64,000 nt of DNA, taken from the sequence record LC680885.1; one strand, 5' to 3'. The translations under genes were made by a program, and so were the position numbers. Within the stretch, counting starts at the first letter, position 1. Each line of letters starts with the position of its first letter. Below are positions 44,424 to 63,353 of the stretch, one piece after another. Under the pieces are notes generated by a model. That model worked only from the letters and a program-made list of their open reading frames with translations, did no database searches and had not been told where the DNA came from.

Positions 44424-44701
44424 TATTATTAATTGAAGTTTATAAATTTTTATTATTAGAGTTTTTCTATGATCCAGAGTATTAATATATTTTATTAATT
44501 AAAAATATATTTATTAATAATATTTATATTAATATTAATTATTAAATTTATAATTACTTACTAATATAAGTAATATATTAATACAAAATTTTAAAAATTT
44601 ATAAATAAAAATTTTATAAAATCTGAATAACCAATTTATATTAATTAAAAAATCAATGACGTTTAAAAATATAATAAATTTGATTGAGGTGTATTAAGAT
44701 A

Positions 44702-45930: not shown

Positions 45931-46182
45931 GTGGATAATAATAATGTAAGTAGTAAAATCAATAAAAATCAATTACAAACAGCAATGAATAATATGTCTA
46001 AAAATATAAATGGTATAAGTAGAAAGATAACAGGACAAGATAAAATTGATGAAATTAATAAACTTAAAAGAGAAAATGAAGAATTACATCGTTTTCTCTT
46101 TAAGATCTATCAAGATGATGAATTTGATAGGAAAGAATTGAAGAAAATTATATTTAAAGATGTAAATAAAAAATTTAAATAA
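45931..46182 (+). CDS. Small coiled-coil protein, KENFK-tail family variant
   Basis: 83 aa; ends KDVNKKFK. Confidence 0.7.
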   Translation: MDNNNVSSKINKNQLQTAMNNMSKNINGISRKITGQDKIDEINKLKRENEELHRFLFKIYQDDEFDRKELKKIIFKDVNKKFK

Positions 46183-46184
46183 GG

Positions 46185-46391
46185 GTGATTAATTTGAATT
46201 CAGATATCCGAATAGATAGAAGTGGCCTTTATATACAATCTAATGAGAAGCAGATGAAAGGACAAATTAAAATTATAGAAGAAAACAAAAAATTAAAAGA
46301 TTTTATTATTGATATTAAAAATAATGGTGGCTATGATGAAAAGGAATTAAATAAAATAGTAAATGAAATTGTTAAGGAGAATTTAAAATAA
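46185..46391 (+). CDS. Small coiled-coil protein, KENFK-tail family
   Basis: 68 aa; ends EIVKENLK. Confidence 0.7.
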   Translation: MINLNSDIRIDRSGLYIQSNEKQMKGQIKIIEENKKLKDFIIDIKNNGGYDEKELNKIVNEIVKENLK

Positions 46392-46846
46392 TGTCAAATG
46401 AAAAAGTTATTGCTAAAGAATTAACGTTAGACCAGAAAATTAAAATGTTAGAACCAAAGATAGATGAAGAGACTTATTTAAGACCATTAAGTCAAGTGGA
46501 TGAGTCTTTTTATAATGAAGTTATTAAAGATGAATTAATTGAGAAAATTAATAATGAAGACCATAAATTTGAAAATAATTTCGATTATCATATATTTAAA
46601 AATGGACCAATACAATTACTAGGTTTCATTTATAAATTTGAATTTAATGAAAATGCAGTAAATGTTAAAAAAGAAAAACCTAATGAAGGTAATATCTATT
46701 TTGGAAGCTTTATATTAAATAATAAAAATAAAAAAGATGATTCAATATATTTACTTAGAGTTGATAGCAGCTTAGTTGATTTTAGTCTATTAGAAAATAA
46801 AAAATATAAAGAATTTGGTAGAAACTTATTTAAATTAATTAAATAG
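46391..46846 (+). CDS. Hypothetical protein
   Basis: 151 aa; translationally coupled; AAGGAG RBS. Confidence 0.75.
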   Translation: MSNEKVIAKELTLDQKIKMLEPKIDEETYLRPLSQVDESFYNEVIKDELIEKINNEDHKFENNFDYHIFKNGPIQLLGFIYKFEFNENAVNVKKEKPNEGNIYFGSFILNNKNKKDDSIYLLRVDSSLVDFSLLENKKYKEFGRNLFKLIK

Positions 46847-46857
46847 GAGTGATATAA

Positions 46858-47136
46858 ATGGATAAAGAAATCGAAGATTTAGCAGGAAAAATAAATAATC
46901 TAGAAATTGACCTTAAAGGGATGAATTACAGATTATCTAATGATAAACAAGTTATTGATTTTGAAATAAATAAAATTAATGAATATATTAAATTTTTACA
47001 TGAAGAAAATCAAAGCATCAAAAAAGAAAATATGTTGTTAAAAGAAGCAATAGTGTCTATTTCTAAACATACAGAATTTAAGAATGATTATATAAATAAA
47101 CTGTCTAAAGAAATTGTTAAAGAAAATTTTAAATAA
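46858..47136 (+). CDS. Small coiled-coil protein, KENFK-tail family
   Basis: 92 aa; ends EIVKENFK. Confidence 0.75.
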   Translation: MDKEIEDLAGKINNLEIDLKGMNYRLSNDKQVIDFEINKINEYIKFLHEENQSIKKENMLLKEAIVSISKHTEFKNDYINKLSKEIVKENFK

Positions 47137-47156
47137 TAAAGAGATGTGATTTTATT

Positions 47157-47432
47157 TTGAATAATGAAAAAAGTTTAATTAAGCGTATGGAAGATTTAGA
47201 AGAACGTACTAGAATGAATGAAATTAAATTAAATACTATGAAAGATAATTATCATTATATAAATGACATTATAGGCACATTAATTAATAGAATAGAAAAT
47301 TCTAATCAAACTAATGAAAAGAAATTAGATGAAATAAGATTAGAGTTAGTCCGTCTTTCTAACGAATTAAATTCACATTCTGAAGTAACTAAAAAGTATC
47401 TAAAGAATTTTATCAAAGATAATCTTAAATAA
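47157..47432 (+). CDS. Small coiled-coil protein, KENFK-tail family
   Basis: 91 aa; ends FIKDNLK. Confidence 0.75.
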   Translation: MNNEKSLIKRMEDLEERTRMNEIKLNTMKDNYHYINDIIGTLINRIENSNQTNEKKLDEIRLELVRLSNELNSHSEVTKKYLKNFIKDNLK

Positions 47433-47436
47433 AGGA

Positions 47437-47724
47437 ATGAAGTGTATGAAGACTATTAAAAGAATAATTGGTTCAGAAGAATTTATCAATACGGTAAAGA
47501 AAACTATAGCTAGAACTAAGAAAGCAGAAGAAAAATTTTATGATTTAAATAATAGAGTTGATAAAGCTTTATCTTTAGCTAGTAGAGTTGTTGAAGATAA
47601 TAAAGAAAAAGAAAGACAAATTAAAGAGCTAAAAGAAGCTTTATCTAAAGAAAAAATTAATAACAGAAGCATAAAATCCCGATATAATAGATTATTATAT
47701 AAAAATGGAAATGGAGGGAAATAA
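47437..47724 (+). CDS. Small coiled-coil hypothetical protein
   Basis: 95 aa ORF in the same operon. Confidence 0.7.
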   Translation: MKCMKTIKRIIGSEEFINTVKKTIARTKKAEEKFYDLNNRVDKALSLASRVVEDNKEKERQIKELKEALSKEKINNRSIKSRYNRLLYKNGNGGK

Positions 47725-47729
47725 TAATT

Positions 47730-47957
47730 ATGAACTCAAATATTAATTTTAATGATAATGGATCATCTATGGATGAACTATATTCAAGAATGCAACTTAG
47801 AGCCGCTAAACAAGTAGAAAAAGATATATTGGGAGATAATGAAAAAGATTCCCTAGAAAAAGAAGTAAAAGAACTTAGAGAACTTGTTCTTGAAGTAGCT
47901 AAAAAGTATGATGTTAAAGAAATAAAAGAATATCTAGTTAGAAAAAATATGAAATAG
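47730..47957 (+). CDS. Small coiled-coil protein, KENFK-tail family variant
   Basis: 75 aa; ends LVRKNMK. Confidence 0.7.
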   Translation: MNSNINFNDNGSSMDELYSRMQLRAAKQVEKDILGDNEKDSLEKEVKELRELVLEVAKKYDVKEIKEYLVRKNMK

Positions 47958-47982
47958 TGTTTAAGAAAAGAGTTGAATAAAA

Positions 47983-48174
47983 TTGGTTGAAAATGATTTA
48001 GATATCTTTAAAGCAATTGAAAAAGCAACTAATAATATCTTAGATAAAAATGAAAAACTAAAAAGTGAGAATTTAGAACTTAAAGAATTGATATTAGATA
48101 TTTCTAAAGAATATAATATAAAAGATAAAAGAATAACTGAAATAAAAGTTGATCTAGCAAAAAATAAGAGGTAA
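47983..48174 (+). CDS. Small coiled-coil protein
   Basis: 63 aa; ENLELKELILDISKEY shares the module of its neighbours. Confidence 0.55.
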   Translation: MVENDLDIFKAIEKATNNILDKNEKLKSENLELKELILDISKEYNIKDKRITEIKVDLAKNKR

Positions 48175-48197
48175 TGACAAATTAATGTCATTACCTC
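48168..48197. terminator. Bidirectional terminator
   Basis: gaggtaatgaca/tgtcattacctc 12-bp stem between convergent genes. Confidence 0.8.
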
Positions 48198-48210
48198 AAT
48201 TATACTGCTT

Positions 48211-50439
48211 TTAGTCATCATATTTATCTTTATATTCATAATAACTATCAAATTGAACTTCTAAACCTGAGAAAGCTGAAATGAATCCCATTCTACCTTC
48301 CATATTGATATTTTCAATATCTTTAAAATCAACATCTGGTTTACGATAATTGAAATTCTTATTTTTGTCTATAAATATTCTAATTCTATTTTCATTTTTA
48401 ATAATCTTGATATACTTGTTATTAATGTCTAATGGAACATGATTAGTTAAAAATAATTGTTTTTCTGATTCATCTTGGAATATTTCTTTAGGTTTTCCAA
48501 ATACTTTATCAATTTCATAGAAACCAGTTTTCATTATACGGTCAGGATCTTTCATTACATCTCCATCATTTAGATCAAAGTAAGGAACATCCCAATTTTC
48601 TTGTTGAGAAGCTATCCAAAGCATGTAACCTGAATTGAGTTGAGTGTTATAATCAAATACGATTCCTGCTCCACCAGTTTTATTTTTATTAATTACTTTA
48701 AATGTCATAATATAATTTTTAGGGAATTTAAAGTTTTGACTATACACATAATTTAATGCATCATCATCGAATTTAGTTGTTCCATCTATGAAGCTGATAT
48801 ATCCATAATTACCTAATGACTGTTTAGATAAAGTTTTATTATAAAATCCTGTATAAGTTTGAGTTTCTACAGGGAATGTACCATATGATCTTAATGCAAC
48901 TATCATAGGATTAAAGTATATTCCTGATCTACTCTCATCATAGAAATAATCAGAACCATCTGGATTTTTAAGTGAATAATTATACTCCAACTCAACATTA
49001 TACCAATCTTCTTTAGTTACGATAAATGTATTATCGAATTCTTCATGACTAATTCCAGCTATTTCAAATTCATCTAAACTAACTTGAATTATTTCATTTG
49101 GATCAACGTCATCAACAAAATTTGTTAATTTGACTTCTATTTCCATTCTCTTAATATTTTTCATATTGTACATCATATGTTTAAGATATGATTTTTGACC
49201 TTGAGTATTATAATTTTTATTATTTGAAGGGAATATATTTTCTACTTTTTTAACTTTACCTGTATTTGATGTTAATGTGATATCATAAACTAACTTAGCT
49301 GTAGGATGATTATTATCTTTAAAGTTAGTTGAATATCCCATATTAAAAGCAAAGAAATCATAATTTAATAAACGTTTAATATTCATTCTAGGATTTTCAT
49401 TTTCATCATCTAAAGTTATTTTAACAAATGATGCAGAATTTTCATCTTCTTTATCAGATTTACTTAAAATATCTCCTTTAACTTCATATAAACCGGTTTC
49501 TTGATTAAAACTTACTGAAGATAATCTTGTTGATTCAAGATTAGAATGACTTACATCTTCATCATTAGCTTTTCTTAAATCAAATATAGCTGTAGGTGCT
49601 TTAAATTGATAGTTCTCTGTAGCATTAATTATATTAAAACCTTTTCGATCTGTTATTTTTAATTTAGATGTACCATTTTGTAAAGGTGCAAATAAATATT
49701 TCTCTCCTGGTTTAAAATACATTTTACCTTGAAATTTACGTGAAAAACCTTTTTTGTAAAATAGATGTGGTAGAGTTTTTAAACCATCGTTATTAAGTGT
49801 AAATGGTTCTACTAAATCTTTATTATCTGTATCAGGTCTATAGAATTTATGCTCATGAACTTCATGTCTTTCTCTTAGATATCTATCAGAAGTGATATTT
49901 TCTAATTTATCTTCAAAATCAGTTTCAGGTACAAACGGTATAATTCTAGGATCGTTATAACCCGGAGTAACTCTACCGGATTTTTCTTCAGTACTTTTCA
50001 TCATGTGTTTAAAAATAGGCTTGGGATTATTTTCAGTGCCTAATATTTCATTTTCTTCATTAATAATCTTATTTAAATCATTAATGACAGTCTCTGGGAA
50101 AATTTTTACAGTATCTGTATTAAATTGATCTACTGTTTGCATATCATTAACAAAAAGTAAAAGATACCAAAGATCAGTAGTTCCATATAGTTCATTAGAT
50201 AGATATTCAGGCCGATAGTGATATGATTTTGATAAGTCATAATCTATTAAATCTCTTTTAAGTACATTTTCATATTTTTTTAGTAATGGTAAACTAAAGA
50301 CAGCTTGTTTTTCAAATAAATACCATTCTGATATATTATTAAGTAATATTTTATTCGTCTTGGAGTATTCTATTTCATCAGACATTTCAGGTACATCATT
50401 TCTACCCATATTGTTATTTCCTACGTCACGAATAAGCAA
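48211..50439 (-). CDS. Baseplate wedge gp53/LysM-like protein with C-terminal lectin-like beta-sandwich domains
   Basis: YHYRPEYLSNELYGTTDLWYLLLFVN is the gp53/tail-X signature; C-terminal GGAGIVF...GYMLWI...GRMGF is ConA/DUF1080-like. Confidence 0.6.
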   Translation of the reverse strand: MLIRDVGNNNMGRNDVPEMSDEIEYSKTNKILLNNISEWYLFEKQAVFSLPLLKKYENVLKRDLIDYDLSKSYHYRPEYLSNELYGTTDLWYLLLFVNDMQTVDQFNTDTVKIFPETVINDLNKIINEENEILGTENNPKPIFKHMMKSTEEKSGRVTPGYNDPRIIPFVPETDFEDKLENITSDRYLRERHEVHEHKFYRPDTDNKDLVEPFTLNNDGLKTLPHLFYKKGFSRKFQGKMYFKPGEKYLFAPLQNGTSKLKITDRKGFNIINATENYQFKAPTAIFDLRKANDEDVSHSNLESTRLSSVSFNQETGLYEVKGDILSKSDKEDENSASFVKITLDDENENPRMNIKRLLNYDFFAFNMGYSTNFKDNNHPTAKLVYDITLTSNTGKVKKVENIFPSNNKNYNTQGQKSYLKHMMYNMKNIKRMEIEVKLTNFVDDVDPNEIIQVSLDEFEIAGISHEEFDNTFIVTKEDWYNVELEYNYSLKNPDGSDYFYDESRSGIYFNPMIVALRSYGTFPVETQTYTGFYNKTLSKQSLGNYGYISFIDGTTKFDDDALNYVYSQNFKFPKNYIMTFKVINKNKTGGAGIVFDYNTQLNSGYMLWIASQQENWDVPYFDLNDGDVMKDPDRIMKTGFYEIDKVFGKPKEIFQDESEKQLFLTNHVPLDINNKYIKIIKNENRIRIFIDKNKNFNYRKPDVDFKDIENINMEGRMGFISAFSGLEVQFDSYYEYKDKYDD

Positions 50440-50472
50440 AATTATTTCACTTCCATTCTTATTTTGTTATAA

Positions 50473-50484
50473 TAAATGCATGTT
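50473..50484 (-). promoter_or_regulatory. Putative late promoter
   Basis: AACAtgcattTA 34 nt upstream of TTG 50439. Confidence 0.6.
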
Positions 50485-50535
50485 AAAGTTCGAATGAGCA
50501 TATTAATAAAAAACTAAAAATTTCAACTAATATTT

Positions 50536-50557
50536 TAAATATATATTATTTTAATGA
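50536..50557 (+). promoter_or_regulatory. Putative early promoter TAAATATATATTATTTTAATGA
   Basis: Identical to 44402-44423 (-). Confidence 0.65.
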
Positions 50558-50623
50558 GATTGAGATGGAATTAATCTTAATACTCAAAAATAAAAATTTT
50601 TAATTACAAGGAGAGATTTGGAT

Positions 50624-52168
50624 ATGGCAAAAGTAAAATACTCACAAACAAAATTATTGGTAAGAGGAGCATTTAGATCAGATGAAATTATCAACGTAGT
50701 TGGTGATGGCGGAATTGGTAAAACACAAATGATGAGAGATATTGCAGAAGAAGATAATATGAACTTCATTACTATCGCTGCAAATAACCTTAAAGAAGGG
50801 GAATTATCTTTACCAATGTTATCACAAAAAGATAATGAAGTTATCTATGCTCCAATGGATAAAATTAAGTTAGCTAATAGTCTTTTTGAGAGATATAAAG
50901 AGTATCAAAGAGAAGGTGGAAAACAATATTCACGTAAAGACCTTTCTTTAAAATCTGTTGATGAATTAAAAGAAATTTATGTGAAATTGACTGGTAAAGA
51001 TGTTGTTGATTATTATGAGGATACTCATGAAAACTATGTTAATAAAGTATTTAACAAAGCTAGAGTTAAAAATGTTAAATATAGTAAAAATGATTTAATG
51101 AAAAAATCATTTAATGAATTAAATGAAATCTTTGTAGAATTAACTGGTAAAGAATTAAGAGATAAAATTGGTAAAGGTTTCTATATCAAAGAAATTTTAG
51201 AAGCAGTTCCAAGACCTTATACTCTATTATTTATTGACGAAATTGGACGTACAGACCAACAAGTACAATCAGAGTTAATGAACTTCTTATTAGAACGTCA
51301 AGTAAATGGTTATCATTTACCACCTAACGTTAAGATTGCATTAGCACAAAACCCATCTTCAGACATGCCAGGATTTGAAGACTCAGAATACGCAGCAACT
51401 TCTATGGATAACGCAGTAAGTTCTCGTATTACATTTGTACACATGGTTCCTGATATTGAAAGTTGGGTAGACTTTGCTACTAAATATAAAGATGGTTCAG
51501 AAAAGCAAAATATTCATCCATCTATTGTTGAGTTCGTAACTGAAAAAGAAAGTACTGAATATTTATTCAGACCTCATAAAGAAGCTGGTAAAGACTTCAA
51601 TGATACTAACCCACGTTCTTGGGAAATGATTTCTAATATGTTATATGTATTAGAAGAAGATGATTTATTTAAATTCTCTAATAGTGAAGAAGAGAAACGT
51701 AAGAAGAAAGATACTTTACAATTCTTCACTGAAGGTAAAATTAATAGTGATTTAGCAAACTTATTTGTTAAATTCTATATTGAAAAACAAGCTAAATTAC
51801 CTCGTCCAAGTGATATTTTATTTGAATATGATAAAGGTAAAATGGTTCCTCGTAAAGAATTAGCTAAACAACACATTGAAGCTATTGAAAGTCAATCAAC
51901 TATTAGACAATTAACATTGAAAACTTCAATGATTAACTATCTTAAAAATAATCCTGATTTAGCTGAAGAACAAGTTATTCAAATTGCTGTAGAAGCTTTA
52001 TTATTAGGTAAAGTTGAAACTAATGCTACACCAATTAGATTAATTTCTAGACTTTCAGAATCTACTGAAGAGTCAGACCAAGAATTATATGAGAAATTCA
52101 CTGATAATGAATTATACAGTGATAAAGCATTTGCATTATACGAACAAATGGTAGGAAGCTTAGGATAA
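50624..52168 (+). CDS. MoxR-like AAA+ ATPase
   Basis: GDGGIGKT, LFIDEIGR, LAQNP, AVSSRI, NPRSWE; ATG 50624 fits the RBS; paired with a VWA gene. Confidence 0.85.
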   Translation: MAKVKYSQTKLLVRGAFRSDEIINVVGDGGIGKTQMMRDIAEEDNMNFITIAANNLKEGELSLPMLSQKDNEVIYAPMDKIKLANSLFERYKEYQREGGKQYSRKDLSLKSVDELKEIYVKLTGKDVVDYYEDTHENYVNKVFNKARVKNVKYSKNDLMKKSFNELNEIFVELTGKELRDKIGKGFYIKEILEAVPRPYTLLFIDEIGRTDQQVQSELMNFLLERQVNGYHLPPNVKIALAQNPSSDMPGFEDSEYAATSMDNAVSSRITFVHMVPDIESWVDFATKYKDGSEKQNIHPSIVEFVTEKESTEYLFRPHKEAGKDFNDTNPRSWEMISNMLYVLEEDDLFKFSNSEEEKRKKKDTLQFFTEGKINSDLANLFVKFYIEKQAKLPRPSDILFEYDKGKMVPRKELAKQHIEAIESQSTIRQLTLKTSMINYLKNNPDLAEEQVIQIAVEALLLGKVETNATPIRLISRLSESTEESDQELYEKFTDNELYSDKAFALYEQMVGSLG

Positions 52169-52175
52169 CAATTAT

Positions 52176-52206
52176 AGATAATGGAGATTATTAGTCTCCA
52201 TTATCT
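52176..52206 (+). terminator. Hairpin/attenuator between the AAA and VWA genes
   Basis: agataatggaga/tctccattatct 12-bp stem followed by a T-rich tract. Confidence 0.6.
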
Positions 52207-52232
52207 TCATTTATTTTTTTATAATTAGGAGA

Positions 52233-54170
52233 GTGAATTTGATAATGAATGATAATAGAACAATTAAAGTAATTAGAAAAGAAATATTAGACGAAGTACA
52301 AGAATCGATTGTAAATGATAGACAGTTAGATAAAAAGAAATTAACGAAGCTTGGAGAAGAATTAATTGAAAATAGTATTTTTGTGTTGTATACTTCTGAT
52401 GTTGATATTTATGGAGTAATGTTAATGACTGTAGAAAAGATCATTGACATTGAAATTCCAGAACCAACTTTCTCAGTATTTGATGAAGAAAAAGGTTATA
52501 AGATTGGTATTAATCCAGTGTTATTAGCCACTATGGTTGATAAAGATGAAGAAATAGTTTCTATGTTCCTACATGAAGTTATCCATGTAGCTCATGGACA
52601 TTTAATTGAATTTAGAATGTTAAGAAATAAAGAAGATTCTCAATTAAAAATGTTAAGTCACTTAGGAATGGATTTATCAGTATTTGAAATTGAAGAAGAC
52701 TTCCAATTAGGTAAACGTGAAGCTAATACAAGTAAAAAAGTTTTACCTGAAATTGCACCTAATGTAGATAAGATTGAAAAGTATATTCAAGATAAATTTA
52801 ATAAAACAAATTTTAAATTAAATCATAATGATGCTTCTCACTATTATATTAAACAATTAGTAGATATCTACAAAGAAAATAATGAAGAAGATATGTTTGA
52901 TTCTATGGGTGAATCTATGCAAAATATGATTCAAGAATCTTCAGAAAAACAGAATGAACGTGATGAAGATTCATTGAATGAAGAAAATGAAATGTTGAAA
53001 GACATGTTAGAAGATTTAAAAGACATTGAAGATAAAAATGATTTATCTAGTAAATTAGAAGATAATAAACTAGAAGAAAACAAAGTTAATGATTTTGAAA
53101 ATAAAGCTCAAGATTATATGAATAAATTAGATGAAATGAATCAAAATGATGAAGAGAATAGTAATGATACTCAAAATCAGAAAAATATAGAAGAGAAAAT
53201 GAATGATTTACTAGATTCAATGAGAAATAATACTTCAGATAATAAATTTAATAGTAAAGATAATAATGATTTATCTGATAAAATACAAGAAATGAAATCA
53301 GATATATTAAATCAAATGATTCAGAATAATATGCAACAGGGTTCTCAAGGTATGCAAGGTGAAGATGGTGGAATGCAAGACGGACAAAATGTTTCTGATA
53401 TGGGAAGTAACATGACTATGTCATCTTCTTTAGATGGAAATTCTAAATATGCAGATAAATTTGATTCCAATCCTCTTGAAGGAGATGCTACAGAGGAAAG
53501 AATGAAAGACCAATTGTATGATTTATTAGAAAGTGCTAGTAGTAATAGTCGTGGTGATACACCTAATCATATTAAAGAACAAATTGAAATTCTAAAACGT
53601 AAACCTAAGATTAAATGGCAAGATTATCTTAAAGCTAAAGTAGGTAAAAAACGTTCTTCTAGTACGAAAACTATTTTAAGAAGAAATAGAAGACAACCTT
53701 ATCGTAGTGATGTACGTGGAACTTTACCTGGTAGAAAATTAGGTAAAGTATTTGCGGCTATTGACACTTCAGGTTCAATGGGTAGAAATGAAATTGAAGA
53801 AATTATTGCTGAATTGTATTATATTAGTAGTGATATGAAAATTGATTTAGTTTTATTATTCTTTTCAACTGGTGTTGAAGAAGTAGTTGAAGTAAACAGA
53901 CCAAATCAATTTAATGATTATGTAATGGGTCGTGGCGGAACTTACTTCAGTTCTGTATTTGATTTCTTAAATGAAACTGATAACAAACGTAAATATTCAG
54001 TATCAAAAGATGATACTCTATTATTCTTCTCAGATGGTTTTGGAGAACCTGAGGTGGAATACGGTGTATTAACTGATGTTGTTTGGGTTATTACTGAAGA
54101 TGAAAATAATCTTTCAGTTAGAGATCCAAAAGGTAAAGTACTAAAATTAGAAATAGATAATAAAAGATAA
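52233..54170 (+). CDS. DUF2201-type metallopeptidase-like/VWA domain protein
   Basis: FLHEVIHVAHGH; MIDAS AIDTSGSM, GRGGT, FFSDGFG. Confidence 0.85.
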   Translation: MNLIMNDNRTIKVIRKEILDEVQESIVNDRQLDKKKLTKLGEELIENSIFVLYTSDVDIYGVMLMTVEKIIDIEIPEPTFSVFDEEKGYKIGINPVLLATMVDKDEEIVSMFLHEVIHVAHGHLIEFRMLRNKEDSQLKMLSHLGMDLSVFEIEEDFQLGKREANTSKKVLPEIAPNVDKIEKYIQDKFNKTNFKLNHNDASHYYIKQLVDIYKENNEEDMFDSMGESMQNMIQESSEKQNERDEDSLNEENEMLKDMLEDLKDIEDKNDLSSKLEDNKLEENKVNDFENKAQDYMNKLDEMNQNDEENSNDTQNQKNIEEKMNDLLDSMRNNTSDNKFNSKDNNDLSDKIQEMKSDILNQMIQNNMQQGSQGMQGEDGGMQDGQNVSDMGSNMTMSSSLDGNSKYADKFDSNPLEGDATEERMKDQLYDLLESASSNSRGDTPNHIKEQIEILKRKPKIKWQDYLKAKVGKKRSSSTKTILRRNRRQPYRSDVRGTLPGRKLGKVFAAIDTSGSMGRNEIEEIIAELYYISSDMKIDLVLLFFSTGVEEVVEVNRPNQFNDYVMGRGGTYFSSVFDFLNETDNKRKYSVSKDDTLLFFSDGFGEPEVEYGVLTDVVWVITEDENNLSVRDPKGKVLKLEIDNKR

Positions 54171-54178
54171 TTCAAATT

Positions 54179-54210
54179 ACGTCAATGGATATTAATTTAT
54201 CCATTGACGT
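54179..54210 (+). terminator. Intrinsic terminator
   Basis: acgtcaatggata/tatccattgacgt 13-bp stem. Confidence 0.75.
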
Positions 54211-54247
54211 TTATATTTAAAATTTTTTACTTAAAGGAGATTAAACA

Positions 54248-56311: not shown

Positions 56312-56322
56312 ATATATATTAT
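56309..56322 (+). promoter_or_regulatory. Putative early promoter TAAATATATATTAT followed by a 5' hairpin (56326-56355)
   Basis: Third copy of the early motif, upstream of ORF 56384. Confidence 0.55.
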
Positions 56323-56383
56323 ATAATTGAGTTGGTAATTGAACTTATCAACTCAATTTAATTTTTAATTAATAGGAGATGAA

Positions 56384-57571
56384 ATGGATATGAGTAAAGC
56401 AATAAAAGATTTATTTATCAATTACAATATATCTTATATTGAAGTTAATGAAGATCATGAACTTAATGAAATTGATAAAGAAGAATTATTAAAAATATTA
56501 GATTTTGATATTAAATTTGAAAAGGAAGAAATTTTAATAAGTGATAATATTAAAATAAATAATTTTAACGGTAATAAGTTAATAAATTTTGTATTTAATT
56601 ATTACTATACAGATAATGAATCACTAAAAGTATTTTTAAAAGACGTTATCAAAGATATTATTATGTATGGATATAAAGAAGATAGAAAAATAAGTCTAAA
56701 TATAAATCAATTACCTTTAGTATTTTATATAAATAAATTTTGTAAAGATAATGACATTAAAAATATTAAATTCTTTTATACTTTTAAAAATTCTTATGGG
56801 AATTTTTCATTTGGTTTATTAAAAGAAGAACATCTAGATGAATTTATTGATGATATAGAAGAAATAAGCAATAATAAGTTCTTCAATTTAAATAGTGGAT
56901 TATTAGATAATGACTTAATAATTAATGGAAATGAAAAGAAATTTATGAAGCTAATATCAAGTTTAATAGATTTAGATATGTCACATAAGGGTAATATATT
57001 TAAATTAAAAATGATAAATTATTTTTATAAATTATTTAATAGTTATATTAATAGTAAAGAAGATTTAGAATATGCAGATGAATTAATGAAGTTTAAAATA
57101 GATAGTCTTAAATATGGTGAATTTAATAAATATTATCTATATGAAAGATTTATAATCGGTATAGATAATTTATATGAACAAGAATTCTTAGGATATAATA
57201 CAAGAATGAATTATAATTATTTTATTGATAAAATACAAAAAATTGAAGATGAAGATGAAGTTAAATATATTTCAAAAATTGTTTTCTTTACATTAATAGA
57301 TGATATTTATAATGAAGCATCATTCTTTTTATCTTTTAGAACAGTCAATAAATATACTGATATTGCAGTTAAAGAAATATTGAAATTGATTGAAGACAAT
57401 CTTACAGAAAATCAGAAGAAACAATTTGTCAGAGAATATATGAGTATGAAAGATAGTTCATTTTATGCTTCAAATGAAAAATATAATCAAACATCTACAC
57501 TTGTTAAAATGTCTAAAGGGAAATTGAAAAAATTAATTATGAATGAAACAGTTAAAAAGACATTTATTTAA
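56384..57571 (+). CDS. Hypothetical protein
   Basis: 395 aa; ends TVKKTFI. Confidence 0.8.
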   Translation: MDMSKAIKDLFINYNISYIEVNEDHELNEIDKEELLKILDFDIKFEKEEILISDNIKINNFNGNKLINFVFNYYYTDNESLKVFLKDVIKDIIMYGYKEDRKISLNINQLPLVFYINKFCKDNDIKNIKFFYTFKNSYGNFSFGLLKEEHLDEFIDDIEEISNNKFFNLNSGLLDNDLIINGNEKKFMKLISSLIDLDMSHKGNIFKLKMINYFYKLFNSYINSKEDLEYADELMKFKIDSLKYGEFNKYYLYERFIIGIDNLYEQEFLGYNTRMNYNYFIDKIQKIEDEDEVKYISKIVFFTLIDDIYNEASFFLSFRTVNKYTDIAVKEILKLIEDNLTENQKKQFVREYMSMKDSSFYASNEKYNQTSTLVKMSKGKLKKLIMNETVKKTFI

Positions 57572-57585
57572 AGGAGAATCAGCTT

Positions 57586-58299
57586 ATGTTAGTTAAAAAA
57601 GAAAAATTAAAGAATAGAAATGATATCAGAATAGATCATATTATAAGTATTAATTTAGATGATCCTTCTGCACTTAATATGGTTTCATTCCAATTATTAA
57701 TAGAAAGTAATATTCTGAGTTGTTATATTAATAACAACTTAGATACTACTTTATTTACTAAAAAAGAATTAGATAAATATAATAAATTCATAGATTTTGC
57801 TATTGATAATTTTGAATCAAATGGTTTATTTATAAATAAAAAACCAGATGAATTTCTAACTGGTTTAATAAGAAAAGCTTCTATTTCTAGATTATTTAAA
57901 ATGATCGATCCAATTGATAAAACTATCAGCAATGAAAATTTATTTATTACCAGATTAAAAAATATTAGACATAATATAAATGAAACTGATAGTAAAGATT
58001 TAGCTTACTTCTTATATACTAACTTTAGAGAAGATGTTCCGTTAGATAGATTAAAAGGTTTAATGTCTAACCCACATTTAACATCATTATTTGAGTATTT
58101 AATGAATGGTAATTTAATAATGGAGATTGATGAGCAATTGTTAAATAAATGGATTATGTTTATTGATTATGAAATAGATGGCCTTAAAGGATCCATTTAT
58201 CATAGATTAAGACATAGTTTAGTTAATGTAATCAATAAGTATAATAATATACAAGAAGCTAAAGGTTATTTAGGGTATGAAAGATTAGAATTAGAATAA
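57586..58299 (+). CDS. Hypothetical protein
   Basis: 237 aa, AAGGAG RBS. Confidence 0.8.
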   Translation: MLVKKEKLKNRNDIRIDHIISINLDDPSALNMVSFQLLIESNILSCYINNNLDTTLFTKKELDKYNKFIDFAIDNFESNGLFINKKPDEFLTGLIRKASISRLFKMIDPIDKTISNENLFITRLKNIRHNINETDSKDLAYFLYTNFREDVPLDRLKGLMSNPHLTSLFEYLMNGNLIMEIDEQLLNKWIMFIDYEIDGLKGSIYHRLRHSLVNVINKYNNIQEAKGYLGYERLELE

Positions 58300-58332
58300 A
58301 CTTAAAAAGTTTAGTGAGAAGGGAAATTTTGA

Positions 58333-58992
58333 ATGAAAAAATTTAGAGATGAATTAATAAATCACTATACAAATTTATTGAGATTCAACGATGATTCTTT
58401 TTATTATAGATTAAAAATTAATTATTTGAATTTCGATTTCTCTAAAGATGTAAATTTAAGAAAAAATAATGTGTTTAAATTAAATTATAAAATCAGCTTT
58501 TTCCTATATTTTAAAATTTTAATAAAAGATTTTATTTCAAATAATTTAGATGAAAATGGTGTATCATTATTATTTTCAGATAGTGTTAATAATAATAATT
58601 TTATTTCTACATTATTTGTTAAGAATAATTCTGATATTGAATTGAAACTAGATTTGGGTGTGTATTATGAACTAGATGAAACTAAAATAGTTCTAATAGA
58701 TTTAAATGAAGAGTTTAATATAGAATATTCAGATGATAGTATTATAATTCATACAGATGAAGATAATTTTGAAAATGTAGTTTATTCTATTCTAAACAAA
58801 ATCAAATTCATCTTAGAAGGAAATATATATGCATTTAGCATATCTTTATTTGGCAATGGAAAAATAGGAGATAGTAATATATTTTATTTAGAAGAGATTG
58901 AAAATATATTTAACTCTAGAAAAAATAGTATAATTGAAGAACTTTCTGAAAGTGAAGTTAAAAAATATAAAATCAAAGAAGGGTTTAAATAG
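58333..58992 (+). CDS. Hypothetical protein, KENFK-tail family
   Basis: 219 aa; ends KIKEGFK. Confidence 0.75.
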   Translation: MKKFRDELINHYTNLLRFNDDSFYYRLKINYLNFDFSKDVNLRKNNVFKLNYKISFFLYFKILIKDFISNNLDENGVSLLFSDSVNNNNFISTLFVKNNSDIELKLDLGVYYELDETKIVLIDLNEEFNIEYSDDSIIIHTDEDNFENVVYSILNKIKFILEGNIYAFSISLFGNGKIGDSNIFYLEEIENIFNSRKNSIIEELSESEVKKYKIKEGFK

Positions 58993-58994
58993 TA

Positions 58995-59606
58995 ATGGGT
59001 GATATTAAATTTAATGAAGAATATATGTCAGTTAAAATTTATAAGTTAATTAATTTGTTTGAGTTTCAACAAACAACTCGTAAAAGAGCATTTTCAAACC
59101 ATAATTCTGAAAGTGATGAAAATGAGCTTAATATGTATATAGGTAAAAATGACAATAAAAATATGATTGACATTTTTACTAGTTCTTTCTTTTTATACAA
59201 TCAATTTAAAGATGTTTGCAGTTTAGTATTTAACAATGGTAATACTATTATTGCAGAAATTGAGATATTAAATAAAAATAAATTGTCAATTGAAATTAAT
59301 TCAGAAATCTTAATTGATGATAGTGAAATTAAAAATTTCATTATCAAAAATGATTTTAGTGTAGGAGATGGATTCTTAGGCTTAATTATTGAAAATGATA
59401 AAGAAAAAATTCTTAAATTATTTTTAGAATCATTGTCTGATAGTTATTTTTGGATAAACAAGAAAAGAAGTTTAAATATATCTGATTCTAAAAAAATTAA
59501 ATTTAAAAAATATTTAGAAGATTTATATAAAATGAAAGATTTTTATAGTAAAGAAATCACTGAAAAAGAATATAAAGAAAATATAGTAAAAGATAATTTC
59601 AAATAA
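58995..59606 (+). CDS. Hypothetical protein, KENFK-tail family
   Basis: 203 aa; ends YSKEITEKEYKENIVKDNFK. Confidence 0.75.
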   Translation: MGDIKFNEEYMSVKIYKLINLFEFQQTTRKRAFSNHNSESDENELNMYIGKNDNKNMIDIFTSSFFLYNQFKDVCSLVFNNGNTIIAEIEILNKNKLSIEINSEILIDDSEIKNFIIKNDFSVGDGFLGLIIENDKEKILKLFLESLSDSYFWINKKRSLNISDSKKIKFKKYLEDLYKMKDFYSKEITEKEYKENIVKDNFK

Positions 59607-59697
59607 TATAATCCCAATACTTATTAATGTAATTAACAAATTTAAAAGATTAAAAATTATTTAGTTTACGAAAGATTAGAACTGGAGTGATATTTTA

Positions 59698-60339
59698 ATG
59701 GAAGAGATTTATCTTGATAAAAGATTTGATAGTGAATATTTTAAAATAAAAACTAGAGATATGATAAACTCTGTAAGATTTACTAAAGAACCAAACTTTG
59801 ATTTAATTATAAATAACCGTAAAGAAGAAAAAATTTTATATACTAAAAATGACAGTATTAGAAATTTATTTATTGAATCTTTTATCTTGTATTTAAATAA
59901 TATTACAGACGTTTATACATTTAGTATATCAATCAGTAATATTAAGTTAATTTTTAGTTTAAGATACAATCATACGAATAAAGATACCAAATTTTTAATT
60001 TATATAATAGAAAATGATAAATTTAATTATGAAAAAGATGTATCTGAATTAGAAAAAATATTAAATGACATATCTTCTTTAGTAAATAAAGAATACTATA
60101 TATCTAAAGGTAGTTTTATAATAGACTATTTAGATATAGAAAAAATTGATAAGATATTATATTACATTAATAAATTAGATGATCTTCGTATAATGTTAGA
60201 TGATTCAGAAAAAGAAGGAAAATCGTATTTAAGTTACAACTCTTTTCTTAAAGAACTTTATTTAAAAAGAAACCTATATTCTAAAAGTATTACTAAAAAG
60301 GAATATACTGATAATTTAGTTAAAGAAAATTTTAAATAA
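59698..60339 (+). CDS. Hypothetical protein, KENFK-tail family
   Basis: 213 aa; ends YSKSITKKEYTDNLVKENFK. Confidence 0.75.
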   Translation: MEEIYLDKRFDSEYFKIKTRDMINSVRFTKEPNFDLIINNRKEEKILYTKNDSIRNLFIESFILYLNNITDVYTFSISISNIKLIFSLRYNHTNKDTKFLIYIIENDKFNYEKDVSELEKILNDISSLVNKEYYISKGSFIIDYLDIEKIDKILYYINKLDDLRIMLDDSEKEGKSYLSYNSFLKELYLKRNLYSKSITKKEYTDNLVKENFK

Positions 60340-60344
60340 TATAA

Positions 60345-60377
60345 TCCCAATACCTATTACATCAATAGGTATTGGGA
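60345..60377. terminator. Bidirectional terminator
   Basis: cccaatacctatt/aataggtattggg stem between convergent genes. Confidence 0.8.
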
Positions 60378-60394
60378 AAAATTTAAATTATTTT

Positions 60395-60691
60395 TTATTT
60401 CATGCTGTCTAATTCAGCTAATTTTAATTTAGCTTTAGTTGCATATTTTTGACGAATTATGTCACGCCATTTTTTACGAGCACGAGCAGCTTTTTGATAT
60501 TTAAAATAGATTGGATCTTGAGCTTCTTTAGCTGCAACTAATGCTAATTGGTTTAATCTACGTTTACGTTTAGTACGTTCATCTAAACGCATGATATTTT
60601 GTTCACGTAAAAGAGCTTCATCAGTTGCTTGCATAATTTGCTCTTCTAGTGGAGTAATGTTATTTTTCATAATGGAAGATCTTCCTTTCAA
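60395..60691 (-). CDS. Small basic protein, possibly virion-associated
   Basis: 98 aa (start may be ATG 60670); LLREQNIMRLD...AAKEAQDPIY...RQKYATKA resembles conserved jumbo-phage small proteins. Confidence 0.6.
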   Translation of the reverse strand: MKGRSSIMKNNITPLEEQIMQATDEALLREQNIMRLDERTKRKRRLNQLALVAAKEAQDPIYFKYQKAARARKKWRDIIRQKYATKAKLKLAELDSMK

Positions 60692-60817
60692 TTATTTTTA
60701 TTATTCATTATAATGATTATAAGAAATATGTTTTATTTAAGAAATATGAAAAAATTATTGAACCATAATAACTTATCTTATATAAGTATGAATCTATAAG
60801 GAGATGAGAATTTATTT

Positions 60818-62752
60818 ATGTCTAATCAAGATAATAAATATGAACGTAAAAGAGCTATAACAGGATATTTAGAAAATTTAATCAAATTAATTAAAATAAG
60901 AAAACCTGATATTGATAATGAAAAGTTAATTAATACTTGTAGAGAGTATATTAAAAAACATGTAGATCCAGCTTTAATAGAAATATCTGGACAAAAAATG
61001 AATGTGGATACAACTTTAAGACAAATTATAGATAATAATTTAATTGTAACTGGTTCTGGTTCTATTTATCAGCCTCAATCACAAAGAAAAAATTTAAATG
61101 CAGACATGTTAAAAGACTTTATAGATTCTCGTAAAGTAGCTAAACATAATATGTTTATATATAAAGGTAAAGATGATGTTTTACATGATAAATATATGAA
61201 CGAACAAAAAACAATTAAGATCTTGGCTAACAGTTATTACGGTGCTATGATTCAAAAGAATAGTACATTCTATGATGCTAATTCAGGTCCAGCAACTACA
61301 TATAGTGGTGTTGATATTGTAACTACTTCAGCAATAGCTTTAGAAAGATTTATAGGTGGAAAAATATTCTTTATGAAAATTGATGAAATATATCATTATA
61401 TATTAAGAATAATCAATGAAGAATATAAAGATCATGATATTAAAATAAAAACAATTCCAACTGATATGGAAATTTTAGAAGGTTTAGTTTCTAATGTTGA
61501 AGAATCTTTTAGCGAAGAAGAATATCTTAAATTAGAAGAAGTATTTAGTAAATTAAGTCAAGAAGATAAAAATAAGGTATATTTCAAAAATAACTTATTT
61601 GGTTTAATTGATCATACTGATATATTTGAGAATAAAATTAGTAAAATGACTGGTAGAGAAGATTTCTTAGATCCGAACGAACCACCTGAAGATATGATTC
61701 CATTATTAGATGAATTATTTGAAATATTAAAAGATTGGGTTATATACAACTATCAAGATTATAATAGAATGTATAGAATGAATTACAAGAAACGTAGAAG
61801 TGTTCTCACAATTGACACAGATTCAAATTTCGTTCACTTAGATCCATTATACGAAAAAATGAAATCATTAAAACCTGAAGATTTTCCTTTAGCAGAAAAT
61901 GGTTTAGAAGATAAATTAGAAGAACGTGTAGGTAATATATCTATTATTAACTATCAAATAACTAAATTATTAGAATTATCTTACTATGGATTCTGTAAAG
62001 ATGTAGGATTAGAAGAAGAACATTTAGGTTTAATATCAATGAAAAATGAATTTTTACTTGATAAACAATTAACAACAGATAAAAAGAAAACTTATGCATC
62101 ATCAGTAATTCAACAAGAAGGTAATTTAATTCAACCTCCAGATTTAGATGTTAAAGGTATGGCTATTAGAAAAGTTAACACTAATAAACGTATTAGAGAA
62201 TTATTTACTGAAATATTACAAAAAGATATTTTAGAAAATAAAACTGGTGTAGATCGTATTAAGATAATACGTAAATTTAAAGATATTGAAGAAATGATTA
62301 AGAAATCATTAGATAATGGAGAAATTGAATTCTTAAAACCGTTTAAAGCTAATAATGCTGAAGTGTATAAAGATCCTTATTCTCAAATGGCTTATAGAGC
62401 TGCTTTAGCATGGAATATAATGTTCCCAGAAAAGGAAATAGCACTACCTGCTAAGATATTAGCAGTTAAATTAAATATTAGTACATTTGGAGATATTAAG
62501 AATAAGATAACTGATGAAAATACTTTAAATAGATTTAGAGAAGTATTTAAGAATGAAAGTTTAGTTAAAAATGGTTTAAATGTAATTGCAGTTGAAGGTA
62601 ATACAATTCCTGAAGAGTTTAGACCTTTTATTGACTATGATAGTATGATTGAAGATCATATTAAACCAGGTAAAGATATTATTGAATCTATAGGAGTTAG
62701 AGTATTGGAATCTTCAAATAGCTCATTTGTATCTAATATGATTAAATTCTAA
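60818..62752 (+). CDS. Family B DNA polymerase, palm/thumb part of a split enzyme
   Basis: KTIKILANSYYG (motif B), TIDTDS (motif C), KKKTYA, VKGMAIRK; no exonuclease motifs or clear motif A. Confidence 0.8.
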   Translation: MSNQDNKYERKRAITGYLENLIKLIKIRKPDIDNEKLINTCREYIKKHVDPALIEISGQKMNVDTTLRQIIDNNLIVTGSGSIYQPQSQRKNLNADMLKDFIDSRKVAKHNMFIYKGKDDVLHDKYMNEQKTIKILANSYYGAMIQKNSTFYDANSGPATTYSGVDIVTTSAIALERFIGGKIFFMKIDEIYHYILRIINEEYKDHDIKIKTIPTDMEILEGLVSNVEESFSEEEYLKLEEVFSKLSQEDKNKVYFKNNLFGLIDHTDIFENKISKMTGREDFLDPNEPPEDMIPLLDELFEILKDWVIYNYQDYNRMYRMNYKKRRSVLTIDTDSNFVHLDPLYEKMKSLKPEDFPLAENGLEDKLEERVGNISIINYQITKLLELSYYGFCKDVGLEEEHLGLISMKNEFLLDKQLTTDKKKTYASSVIQQEGNLIQPPDLDVKGMAIRKVNTNKRIRELFTEILQKDILENKTGVDRIKIIRKFKDIEEMIKKSLDNGEIEFLKPFKANNAEVYKDPYSQMAYRAALAWNIMFPEKEIALPAKILAVKLNISTFGDIKNKITDENTLNRFREVFKNESLVKNGLNVIAVEGNTIPEEFRPFIDYDSMIEDHIKPGKDIIESIGVRVLESSNSSFVSNMIKF

Positions 62753-62756
62753 ATAA

Positions 62757-63353
62757 TTGAATGAGGTATTTATTATGGAAAAATACTATAAATTTAATTT
62801 ATTTGAGTGCATACTAAAAAATATTGGTATGCACTCAGATAAATATGAAAATTTGATAAGTAATATAAATAAAAATTTTACATCTTTATATTTTTATGAC
62901 TATGAGATTAATAATAGTGATATAGATAAATTGATATATGATAACATTCAAAAACAATTAATTGATGATAGTTATTTTTTATTTGAAATCAATAATAAAG
63001 AAGAAAGACTATTAGTTGATTTTGAAAATAACCTTTTATATGATAAATATAATGAGAAAATAGGAATGGTTTCTTTAAATAGGATTACTTCTTCTAGAGT
63101 AAATTTATTTTCAGATTTTGAGAATAAATATAGAGATTTAATATTTATGGAAAAAGAAGATATAAAATATGAAAATTTAATTGATATGGGATTTAATATT
63201 GTTACTACTTTTGAAATTTCTACCGTATGTAAAAATAAAATAAATAATTTTAGTTACTTTGGTTTTGATATTAAAGATAATAAAAATAATCTATTAATTG
63301 AATGTGATGAAAAAGAATTCAAAATTAATAAAGTTAAGAATAATTTTATATAA
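62757..63353 (+). CDS. Hypothetical protein, KENFK-tail family variant
   Basis: 198 aa; ends NKVKNNFI. Confidence 0.7.
   Translation: MNEVFIMEKYYKFNLFECILKNIGMHSDKYENLISNINKNFTSLYFYDYEINNSDIDKLIYDNIQKQLIDDSYFLFEINNKEERLLVDFENNLLYDKYNEKIGMVSLNRITSSRVNLFSDFENKYRDLIFMEKEDIKYENLIDMGFNIVTTFEISTVCKNKINNFSYFGFDIKDNKNNLLIECDEKEFKINKVKNNFI

Follow-up and report, generated by a model that had tools for sequence, protein, structure and literature searches.

A C-terminal tail shared by some forty mostly orphan proteins of Staphylococcus jumbo phage S6, and its possible role as a docking peptide

Short terminal peptides that recur across otherwise polymorphic sets of proteins are known from secretion systems, from encapsulins, and from the head proteins of phage T4. 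Considered here is what may be a counterpart in Staphylococcus jumbo phage S6 (LC680885.1), i.e., a C-terminal module with which about one in seven of this phage's proteins ends. The stretch of DNA from which the analysis set out, 'the window', is 64,000 nucleotides (nt) in length and is identical to bases 1-64000 of S6. An earlier note, made from the letters of that window, had described a family of early orphan proteins sharing a six-residue C-terminal tag, [VI]K[ED]N[FL]K followed directly by a stop, with two clusters of such genes bracketing an AAA+/VWA pair. I use here instead the term 'tail' for the longer unit into which that tag resolves, and 'body' for the rest of a tail-bearing protein. 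Genes are named by their first base.

With its 267,055 bp, the phage itself is a jumbo myovirus and belongs to the AR9/PBS1-like group, that is, the group with multisubunit RNA polymerases, and nearly all of its genes are annotated as 'hypothetical protein'. Large lineage-specific expansions have been described in jumbo phages, as seen with the approximately 35 zinc-ribbon copies of Bacillus phage G (Iyer et al. 2021, PMC7824862). Described too, in another jumbo-phage group, is a pair consisting of a MoxR AAA+ ATPase and a VWA protein to which a metallopeptidase is fused, with a role in virion assembly being proposed (PMC7824862). The S6 motif or family is not mentioned in the papers on MarsHill, Madawaska, Machias, PALS2, SA1 and DC4, in Iyer's comparative study, or in a 2026 jumbo-phage review. 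Nine relatives of S6 were available within a phage collection. Their identity to S6 over the AAA/VWA region is 99.8% for PALS_2 and UFV_DC4; identity to S6 is 94% for MarsHill and Madawaska, 91% for LY01, 84% for SA1, and about 78% for AH12, PB50 and Machias.

The C-terminal module in the S6 proteome

For counting, the whole S6 genome was read in six separate pieces, giving 281 non-overlapping open reading frames (ORFs) and 82,514 residues. The strict six-residue pattern occurs eight times in this proteome, with seven of those eight occurrences found at the extreme C-terminus, while a relaxed version of the pattern occurs 30 times, terminally in 24 instances and internally in six. Amino-acid composition would lead one to expect 0.001 (strict) or 0.02-0.03 (relaxed) terminal matches. 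Relaxed matches anywhere should number about 5 by chance, i.e., the six internal ones are at chance level. The ten C-termini quoted in the earlier note are all found at their stop codons, and its supposition of a terminal enrichment of the motif over the K/N/F-rich background is borne out by this genome-wide count. The six-residue tag itself, though real and terminal, is only part of what is conserved, the true unit being a C-terminal module of 18-22 residues.

That module reads, in order, hydrophobic, T/S/D, E/D, K/E, E, Y/I/V, K, any residue, Y, L/K/I, V/I, K/R, any residue, N/T/G, F, K/I/R and stop, often with an extra F or Y lying 4-5 residues upstream. Eighteen columns of it make up a position matrix, derived from S6 termini, with which both the ends and the interiors of the 281 ORF products were scored. 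Thirty-nine termini score 15.5-41 bits and the next terminus, that of 54248, scores 4.0; among approximately 82,000 internal windows the best reaches 13.9 bits and lies inside 58995. As the matrix was built from its own members, the absolute scores are circular, but the contrast between terminal and internal scores is free of that circularity. Together, the terminal enrichment and this contrast rule out chance or composition as the source of the motif. A second scan, of all ORFs of at least 40 amino acids (aa) in the six frames of the S6 genome, adds one member, 73971-74747, which had earlier been dropped by an overlap filter; spurious ORFs in that scan all score below 8 bits.

The tail in total ends 40 of approximately 282 S6 proteins, all 40 of them encoded on the + strand and ranging from 68 to 395 aa in size. 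Their genes are arrayed, with four at 46-48 kb, five at 56-63 kb, nine at 66-72 kb, six at 74-81 kb, one at 179 kb, one at 213 kb, seven at 218.5-222 kb and seven at 240-247 kb. The two clusters of the window thus do form part of a family, as the earlier note had it, but they hold only nine of the 40 members, the other 31 being found elsewhere in the genome (66-81, 179, 213-222 and 240-247 kb). Given below are the members of the window along with the features among which they lie.

44400-44422, - strand: AR9-type early promoter motif.
44684-45910: Dda/RecD-like helicase.
45931-46182, + strand: small protein of 83 aa with the degenerate end DVNKKFK, a misfit to the tail (-14 bits).
46185-46391, + strand (annotated start 46194): small tail-bearer of 68 aa ending EIVKENLK; tail 46335-46388, 16.1 bits.
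46858-47136, + strand: small coiled-coil-like tail-bearer of 92 aa; tail 47080-47133, 15.7 bits; Pfam gives only weak coiled-coil noise.
47157-47432, + strand: small tail-bearer of 91 aa; tail 47376-47429, 15.5 bits.
47730-47957, + strand: small tail-bearer of 75 aa with the full module, ending in DVKEIKEYLVRKNMK; tail 47901-47954, 29.1 bits.
47983-48174, + strand: tail-less small paralog of 46858 and 47730, 63 aa, ending AKNKR (phmmer expectation value, E, of 1e-3 to 46858).
48211-50439, - strand: baseplate wedge protein.
50537-50559, + strand: AR9-type early promoter motif, AAATATATATTAT-N5-TGA, 68 nt upstream of the AAA gene; 21.2 bits.
50618-52168, + strand: AAA+ (MoxR-like) ATPase without tail, Pfam AAA; Walker A 50702-50725, Walker B 51224-51241.
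52233-54170, + strand: VWA-like (DUF2201) protein without tail; HExxH 52572-52586, D-T-S-G-S 53763-53777.
54248-56311, + strand: orphan of 687 aa with the borderline tail SKYLVSRIFI; 4.0 bits, the top non-member terminus.
56310-56332, + strand: AR9-type early promoter motif, 61 nt upstream of 56384 and heading the co-oriented run 56384-60339; 19.8 bits.
56384-57571, + strand: tail-bearer of 395 aa ending in LIMNETVKKTFI; tail 57515-57568, 17.6 bits.
58333-58992, + strand: tail-bearer of 219 aa; tail 58936-58989, 33.4 bits.
58995-59606, + strand: tail-bearer of 203 aa; tail 59550-59603, 39.2 bits; internal tail-like window at residues 105-122, 13.9 bits.
59698-60339, + strand: tail-bearer of 213 aa; tail 60283-60336, 33.7 bits.
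60345-60377, detected on the - strand: terminator-like hairpin closing the 56384-60339 run.
60818-62752: divergent family-B DNA polymerase.
62757-63353, + strand (annotated start 62775): tail-bearer of 198 aa after the DNA polymerase gene, ending KVKNNFI; tail 63297-63350, 33.2 bits.

The first of the small proteins, 45931, had been counted by the earlier note as carrying a variant of the tag. The terminus DVNKKFK is indeed present, but its matrix score sets it outside of the family; similarity to its neighbor 46185 is weak and aligned at the ends (E 4e-5, BLAST run without composition correction). The helix of pattern EN..L+..I..I that the same note saw in the small proteins is visible in 45931, 46185, 46858, 47730 and 47983. 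With larger members the small ones (68-92 aa) have only their last 6-8 residues in common, and the tail of 47730 is conserved in SA1, MarsHill and Machias.

Within the tail, phenylalanine is found at position -2 in 37 of the 40 members, and none of them extends more than one residue past that position. The final residue is K in 30, R in three, I in five, L in one and S in one, with positions -3 and -4 polar. The most conserved charged columns, as counted over 39 members, are K at -13 (29), E at -12 (25), K at -10 (32), K or R at -5 (33) and K at -1 (30). Also among the best-kept columns are F at -2 and V/I at -6, the other hydrophobic positions of the helix being more variable. Such conservation of charged columns is the pattern expected from recognition from outside.

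What is conserved here is peptide rather than DNA, as the earlier note had supposed from synonymous variation. For K, E, N, V, I, L, T, D and Y, the tails use codons just as the genome at large does (e.g., lysine AAA at 0.89 in tails versus 0.86 in the genome, and glutamate GAA at 0.87 versus 0.90), with five leucine, three valine and three isoleucine codons in use, and the sequence after the stop differs among members, consisting of overlapping starts, spacers of 3-90 nt, or terminators. It is from this genome-like codon usage together with variable downstream context that a constraint on the peptide follows. The 57 nt that encode the tail have a mean pairwise DNA identity among members of 0.59, versus 0.36-0.37 for the flanks.

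Tail-bearing genes, their promoters and their neighbors

With the last 20 residues cut, BLAST (E <1e-3) and phmmer (E <0.05) link only four small groups of neighbors, which are 66335/67545, 76346/77144, a trio at 218.5-220.4 kb, and 46858/47983. The genes 58995 and 59698 are tandem paralogs (BLAST E 2e-16). The 14 nt after their stops (59607-59620 and 60340-60353) are identical, TATAATCCCAATAC, with only the copy at 60340-60353 running on into a complete terminator hairpin, one arm of which it overlaps. The presence of TATAATCCCAATAC after both stops implies that the unit of tandem duplication took in the tail as well as part of one hairpin arm. More generally, a Smith-Waterman test of bodies gives a mean z of 0.54, versus 0.11 for pairs of a tail-bearer with a control, and 5.3% versus 2.2% of pairs exceed a z of 3, the top pairs being neighbors within the same array.

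Between arrays the picture is a different one. Six array-level alignments, in which Machias and MarsHill orthologs were included, were compared profile against profile, and with the last 22 residues cut all 15 pairs give hhalign probabilities of at most 1.8%, i.e., no detectable body similarity between arrays, although array profiles are noisy and may miss very remote homology. With full-length profiles, what aligns in all pairs but one is confined to the final 13-25 columns, matched end to end, with probabilities reaching 94% and E down to 9e-8. Members, as judged from these comparisons, would appear to have been multiplied locally by tandem duplication, with only the tail being recognizably common between arrays. 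The 'unrelated N-termini' of the earlier note are thus a fair description between arrays but not within them, given that 58995/59698 and several neighbors elsewhere are tandem paralogs.

Family searches place most of the carriers as orphans, much as the earlier note had described them. Pfam, PHROGs and PADLOC hold no family for any member within the window, and no PDB family was found for most carriers, apart from one weak lead for the 58-63 kb family. With that family as query, a full HMMER search returned four matches from among 1.84 billion representatives, every one of them within the S6 group. When 50,697 phage records were searched by tblastn with a canonical member (E up to 10), ten Staphylococcus jumbo phages alone came up, and close orthologs were all that word-indexed protein searches returned for 59698, for 56384 and for the tail region of 58995. 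Searches for a degenerate V-K-x-N-F-K-stop DNA pattern gave single, chance-like matches per contig (25 in IMG/VR and at least 120 in metagenomes). None of the members has a hydrophobic segment of membrane-span type, and their bodies are acidic, with a median isoelectric point (pI) of 5.3 that is similar to that of other + strand proteins.

The one weak lead comes from a profile of 58333, 58995, 59698 and 62757, whose sole match (E 0.002, 21 bits) is to the N-terminal domain of a sliding clamp, the PCNA1 of a single AT-rich group of archaea. The alignment looks clamp-like and the genes flank that for DNA polymerase, with composition bias a possible cause of the match; for the same bodies, Pfam gives no match to clamp families and the best Foldseek E, as based on a poor AlphaFold2 (AF2) model, is 0.27.

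Tails outlast bodies. Some of the region's most diverged genes in SA1 and Machias are tail-bearers, with identities of 0.18-0.5 for the body and 0.67-0.94 for the tail, as seen, for example, with 56384 (0.28 for the body and 0.94 for the tail, in SA1), with 68229 (0.39 and 0.94) and with 69599 (0.31 and 0.78, in Machias). The tail also has variants specific to subgroups, e.g., with Ser or Glu as the ending in SA1 and Machias. Over S6-Machias pairs, identity of the last 18 residues exceeds that of the body by 0.20 among tail-bearers versus 0.05 among other genes (P 0.02). The borderline 54248 has orthologs with body identities of 0.31-0.36 and identities over the last 18 residues of 0.50-0.67.

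Copy number differs among these phages as well. At 58.3-60.3 kb there are three copies in S6, two in MarsHill, one in LY01 and none in SA1, and at 76.3-77.1 kb its near-twin, PALS_2, is one gene short of S6. At the junction between those two phages, the colinear alignments overlap by approximately 150 nt, consisting of tail, spacer and the start of the next paralog. Outside of the colinear blocks nearly all DNA matches at this locus are to gene 3' ends of about 71 nt (76-90% identity). The extra S6 gene is found as a 92-95% copy in PB50 and AH12, despite a backbone of approximately 78%, its best match in PALS_2 being 31.5%. The differences in copy number, the junction, and the PB50/AH12 copy point to a turnover of the repertoire by unequal as well as inter-phage recombination, with tail repeats involved.

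As to timing, promoters were sought with a matrix of 23 columns, for which the first 99 kb of AR9 supplied 17 annotated early promoters as training sites, these scoring from 15.7 to over 21 bits. Matches in S6 of at least 11 bits number 43, approximately 35 of them intergenic and mostly 45-70 nt upstream of a start codon, with the form AAATATATATTAT-N5-TGA. At least 29 of 40 members, namely 28 of 39 plus 73971-74747 (whose start is 64 nt beyond a motif at 73894), have such a motif ahead of them at a distance of 0-6 co-oriented genes, with no opposite-strand genes intervening. Also encoded behind an early promoter motif are the AAA+ protein, the VWA-metallopeptidase protein and the phage GroEL. 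For the 45931-48174 cluster there is only a degenerate copy, approximately 260 nt upstream of the helicase gene. The MarsHill authors report the same AR9-like motif upstream of 29 genes. Early expression of the tail-bearers may therefore reasonably be inferred, given that AR9-type motifs are found 45-70 nt upstream of most arrays' first gene, and the label 'early' in the earlier note finds its support in that inference. A few AR9-type motifs precede - strand genes beside structural blocks. A plain count of TATATTAT is uninformative as a promoter test (28 found versus 32 expected), and a sigma-70 scan of S6 gave background level.

The pair of genes that the window's two clusters bracket, 50618-54170, is a MoxR AAA+/VWA pair by both of its domains. 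The ATPase scores 28.6 bits for Pfam AAA against a cut-off of 21.2, with AAA_3 below cut-off, and has between Walker A and Walker B an insert of approximately 165 aa containing two repeats that are about 51 aa apart. Those repeats start at 50927 and 51080, read Y-S-[RK]-x-D-L…K-S…E-L-x-E-I-x-V-x-L-T-G-K, and resemble helix-extension-helix DNA-binding motifs; PBS1 relatives carry the annotation 'transcription factor'. The VWA-like protein scores 33 bits for DUF2201, against 26.4, and in its annotated form has D-T-S-G-S at residues 507-511 and H-E-V-I-H at residues 110-114. The HExxH signature is N-terminal, and between the peptidase-like and VWA-like parts, from about residue 215 to 440, is an acidic, Asn-rich linker, a low-complexity stretch of approximately 225 residues in which D, E, N, S, Q and M abound. 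The earlier note drew from the bracketing a link between tag and AAA/VWA pair, which is not supported, the bracketing being incidental in that 31 of the 40 members are encoded far from either cluster.

A different sort of connection to the pair is hinted at by Bacillus phages. Syntenic pairs exist in AR9 (gp028/gp029) and BpSp (gp083/gp084), and directly after them, in AR9 (24579-30840) and in BpSp (8130-12939 and 15616-20926), are multi-copy families with fixed conserved C-termini of their own. The AR9 family consists of ordinary paralogs with approximately 200 homologous residues (E 1e-11 to 1e-38); its 56-aa gp033, which is little beyond the family terminus, parallels the small S6 members. 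A hidden Markov model of AR9 gp030-036 finds nothing in S6, and no S6-type tail is found in the scored first 99 kb of AR9 or, by eye, in 24 kb of BpSp. BLAST finds no S6 counterpart of gp082, the 'ATP-dependent protease' of AR9. A likeness both to the AR9/BpSp termini and to the S6 tail is seen at the end of 54248, …KKVRSKYLVSRIFI. There are hints here, not made significant, that the S6 module may have arisen from an ancestral family beside the AAA/VWA pair.

Other observations concern neighboring genes. The tail-less 57586-58299 (237 aa), which lies within the same run as several tail-bearers, ends in another conserved C-terminus, unlike the tail, of which the final 18 residues (…GYLGYERLELE) are 100% identical in Machias and 94% in SA1, while the body is only 56-74% identical. 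The polymerase gene, 60818-62752, is a single uninterrupted ORF in S6 and SA1, is annotated as two to three joined pieces in MarsHill and Machias, and in LY01 a transposase gene is found near this locus. Lastly, 30721-36603 and 36627-42605, both on the - strand, are adjacent giant genes whose products, of 1960 and 1992 aa, are paralogous over their full length (E 9e-85) and, by annotation in relatives, tape measure proteins.

Docking peptide and alternative explanations

The most likely mechanism, if one that is held only tentatively, is that the tail serves as a docking label, or peptide, for one shared partner. It is preferred because only the tail is common between arrays, because charged positions are the best kept, because tails outlast bodies, and because the distance to the carboxylate is fixed. 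The tail would then be a self-contained peptide, made up of a probable β-strand residue pair, a capped three-turn α-helix, and an obligatory Phe-X-COOH. The run hydrophobic-T/S/D-x-x-E-hydrophobic presumably is a capping box with hydrophobic staple and the end, i.e., hydrophobic, three residues, polar C-cap, N/G and Phe, presumably is a Schellman-type C-cap, and by established helix-capping rules these caps should frame one three-turn helix that is stable on its own.

Such a peptide would bind in trans, as a common docking peptide, thereby tying approximately 40 rapidly diversifying early proteins to one partner, with the variable bodies carrying individual activities. The repertoire would grow, shrink and be swapped between phages through unequal recombination in duplicated DNA, running from the 3' end of one gene to the next gene and including the tail-coding stretches of about 70 nt, which are the sole DNA similarity detected between the paralogs compared. 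Candidate partners are the MoxR-type AAA+/VWA-metallopeptidase pair, behind early-type promoter motifs, or instead a host hub, e.g., a Clp unfoldase or the sliding clamp. One might go further and suppose that S6-like phages possess a genome-wide C-terminal address code, one 18-residue helix ending in Phe-X-COOH marking approximately 40 interchangeable early effectors for a single receptor, for which the same candidates would serve as examples. That seems rather unlikely, if worth stating. Were it so, recombination behind the tag would be all that a new effector needs in order to gain function, and the code would be the viral equivalent of signals for secretion or cargo.

Several observations weigh against a docking label, and most of these same observations argue for a quite possible alternative, namely that members constitute one hyper-diverged superfamily of paralogs, spread by tandem duplication and dispersal from a single ancestral gene. 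The C-terminal strand-helix would be an end that their common fold cannot do without, retained while the rest drifted past recognition, and there would be no receptor. The genes, that is, are found in tandem arrays and are of similar size within them, paralogy is detectable within arrays, unequal crossing-over is documented between neighbors, and bodies are slightly more alike than controls (the mean z of 0.54 versus 0.11). Tandem duplication combined with similarity of bodies means that common descent can explain many tail carriers without a hub. The hydrophobic residues at -16 and -19/-20, in addition, look like a strand and possibly belong to the fold of each body. Beside the same AAA/VWA pair in AR9 and BpSp are ordinary families of paralogs with fixed C-termini, and as those paralogs too end at a fixed position, a fixed terminus alone is no proof of carboxylate recognition.

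Nor do predicted structures help the docking label, as both AF2 models are poor and thereby uninformative as to whether the helix is free or packed. That of 59698 has a mean predicted local distance difference test score (pLDDT) of 52.6 and is alpha/beta, with the tail modeled as a strand (195-198) and a helix (200-207) at pLDDT below 50; that of 56384 has a mean pLDDT of 55.2 and is mostly helical. Those two low-confidence models nevertheless differ in class, alpha/beta versus all-alpha, which speaks against one common fold. So too do the lack of body similarity between arrays even with profile compared against profile, the range of sizes (68-395 aa) in combination with small members having only 6-8 residues in common, and the stronger retention of charged surface residues than of most hydrophobic ones.

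A special case of the hub is a degron or timer, in which the tail is read by a protease or unfoldase that removes or remodels the early proteins jointly, whether the phage's AAA+/VWA-metallopeptidase or the host's Clp or FtsH. The motif is strictly C-terminal and is found on genes behind early-type promoter motifs, while the AAA+ ATPase gene, itself behind an early motif, is followed by that of a VWA protein with a zinc-peptidase signature and intact metal site; in AR9, BpSp and S6 alike, the genes after the pair are multi-copy families with conserved C-termini. But lysine as last residue in 30 of 40 members makes for a polar end, unlike the non-polar C-terminal degrons, most members lie far from the AAA/VWA genes, and the AAA and VWA proteins are found in virion preparations, which suggests a role in or near particles. 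A degron is, on balance, improbable.

Far less credence still can be given to the tail as a capsid cargo or packaging signal for co-injection, comparable to encapsulin cargo peptides or T4 capsid-targeting sequences. It is by analogy only that diverse carriers, a constant terminal peptide and a very large jumbo capsid would suggest this. Liquid chromatography with tandem mass spectrometry of SA1 virion preparations detected 52 of 259 ORFs (PMC9096886, supplementary sheet S2), and among those 52 are none of the 15 SA1 tail-bearers scoring at least 10 bits, for which P is approximately 0.035 under random detection, small proteins being harder to detect. None of the unscored rest of the syntenic SA1 arrays (ORFs 177-196) was detected in virions either, and the shallow DC4 proteome of 15 proteins contains none identifiable as a tail-bearer.

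Detected in the SA1 preparations were the AAA ATPase (ORF168), the VWA protein (ORF169) and, from 60395-60691 on the - strand, a 91-aa product (ORF173), and the DC4 proteome lists the AAA protein along with a 91-aa protein of pI 10.2 that by position is the 60395 product. These three, i.e., AAA, VWA and basic 60395 product, possibly are particle-associated or instead abundant contaminants. That the AAA and VWA proteins are present in preparations in which 0 of 15 SA1 members are seen tells against the packaging variant of the address label that the earlier note had entertained. All 40 members, furthermore, are in + strand blocks of early type (timing as judged from promoter motifs) and none is in structural blocks.

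Nearly excluded is a nucleic-acid signal that is translated by accident, such as a ribosome-binding site or promoter for the next gene, part of a terminator, or a recombination site, for although the tail of 46185 holds AAGGAG nine bases before the next start, and although tail-coding stretches are the sole DNA repeats detected between paralogs compared and sit in gene gain/loss junctions, codon choice tracks genome usage, the context downstream of stops is variable, codons resembling a ribosome-binding site occur in one member only, and recombination at repeats follows from conservation of the peptide without explaining it.

Most jumbo-phage genes are orphans that offer no handle for study. 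With whichever of these explanations, one-seventh of the S6 gene set, mostly orphans, is marked by one recognizable peptide behind early-type promoters, and many of the tail-bearer genes are among the most variable of this phage group. Should the tail be a docking label, then a single partner would organize a class of host-takeover or counter-defense proteins that is recognizable from sequence alone. Should it be only the end of a diverged fold, then the family would still be among the largest lineage-specific expansions in a Gram-positive phage. It would, in addition, clearly exemplify how recombination at short, conserved repeats within coding sequence turns genes over. For annotators the motif also offers a simple rule, applicable to 40 'hypothetical proteins' in each of ten Staphylococcus phage genomes, the phages being under consideration for therapy.

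Comparison with known systems

Sliding-clamp-binding motifs have a leading glutamine followed by hydrophobic or aromatic residues at fixed spacing. The S6 tail does not conform to a motif of this type (PIP-box or beta-clamp), with K, N, E or D at -9, with N, T, G or S at -3, and with only -2 aromatic. Considered more broadly, tails that bind hubs (clamp, TPR, PDZ or HbYX-type) resemble that of S6 in being strictly terminal, in having an aromatic residue next to the free carboxylate, and in being carried by many different proteins; the S6 tail differs from them in its polar -3 and -4, in lacking the leading glutamine, and in lacking an aromatic pair.

Degrons of ssrA type end in small, non-polar residues. 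As with the S6 tail, these are terminal peptides found on many unrelated proteins. The S6 tail, by contrast, is an 18-residue module with a presumed capped helix, mostly ending in lysine.

Cargo peptides of encapsulin and T4 type likewise are short terminal peptides on otherwise unrelated proteins, and that of encapsulins is at the extreme C-terminus as well. One receptor surface reads the peptide, which for encapsulins is the HK97-fold shell. The T4 signal, however, is N-terminal and is cleaved off, whereas the S6 tail is C-terminal, and no likeness of motif is seen.

The pair described by Iyer et al. is resembled by that of S6 in its AAA protein, its VWA-like DUF2201 protein, and its zinc-peptidase and metal-site signatures. 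The S6 pair differs in having an AAA domain that is split by the insert of approximately 165 aa, and such pairs are not known to have been linked to any family of C-terminal motifs. Similar in genetic organization are the jumbo-phage expansions, i.e., AR9 gp030-036 and BpSp gp088-091 and gp099-104, which as in S6 consist of many tandem copies with fixed conserved C-termini. Homology within the AR9 family spans approximately 200 residues, whereas what is shared between S6 arrays is 13-25 terminal columns.

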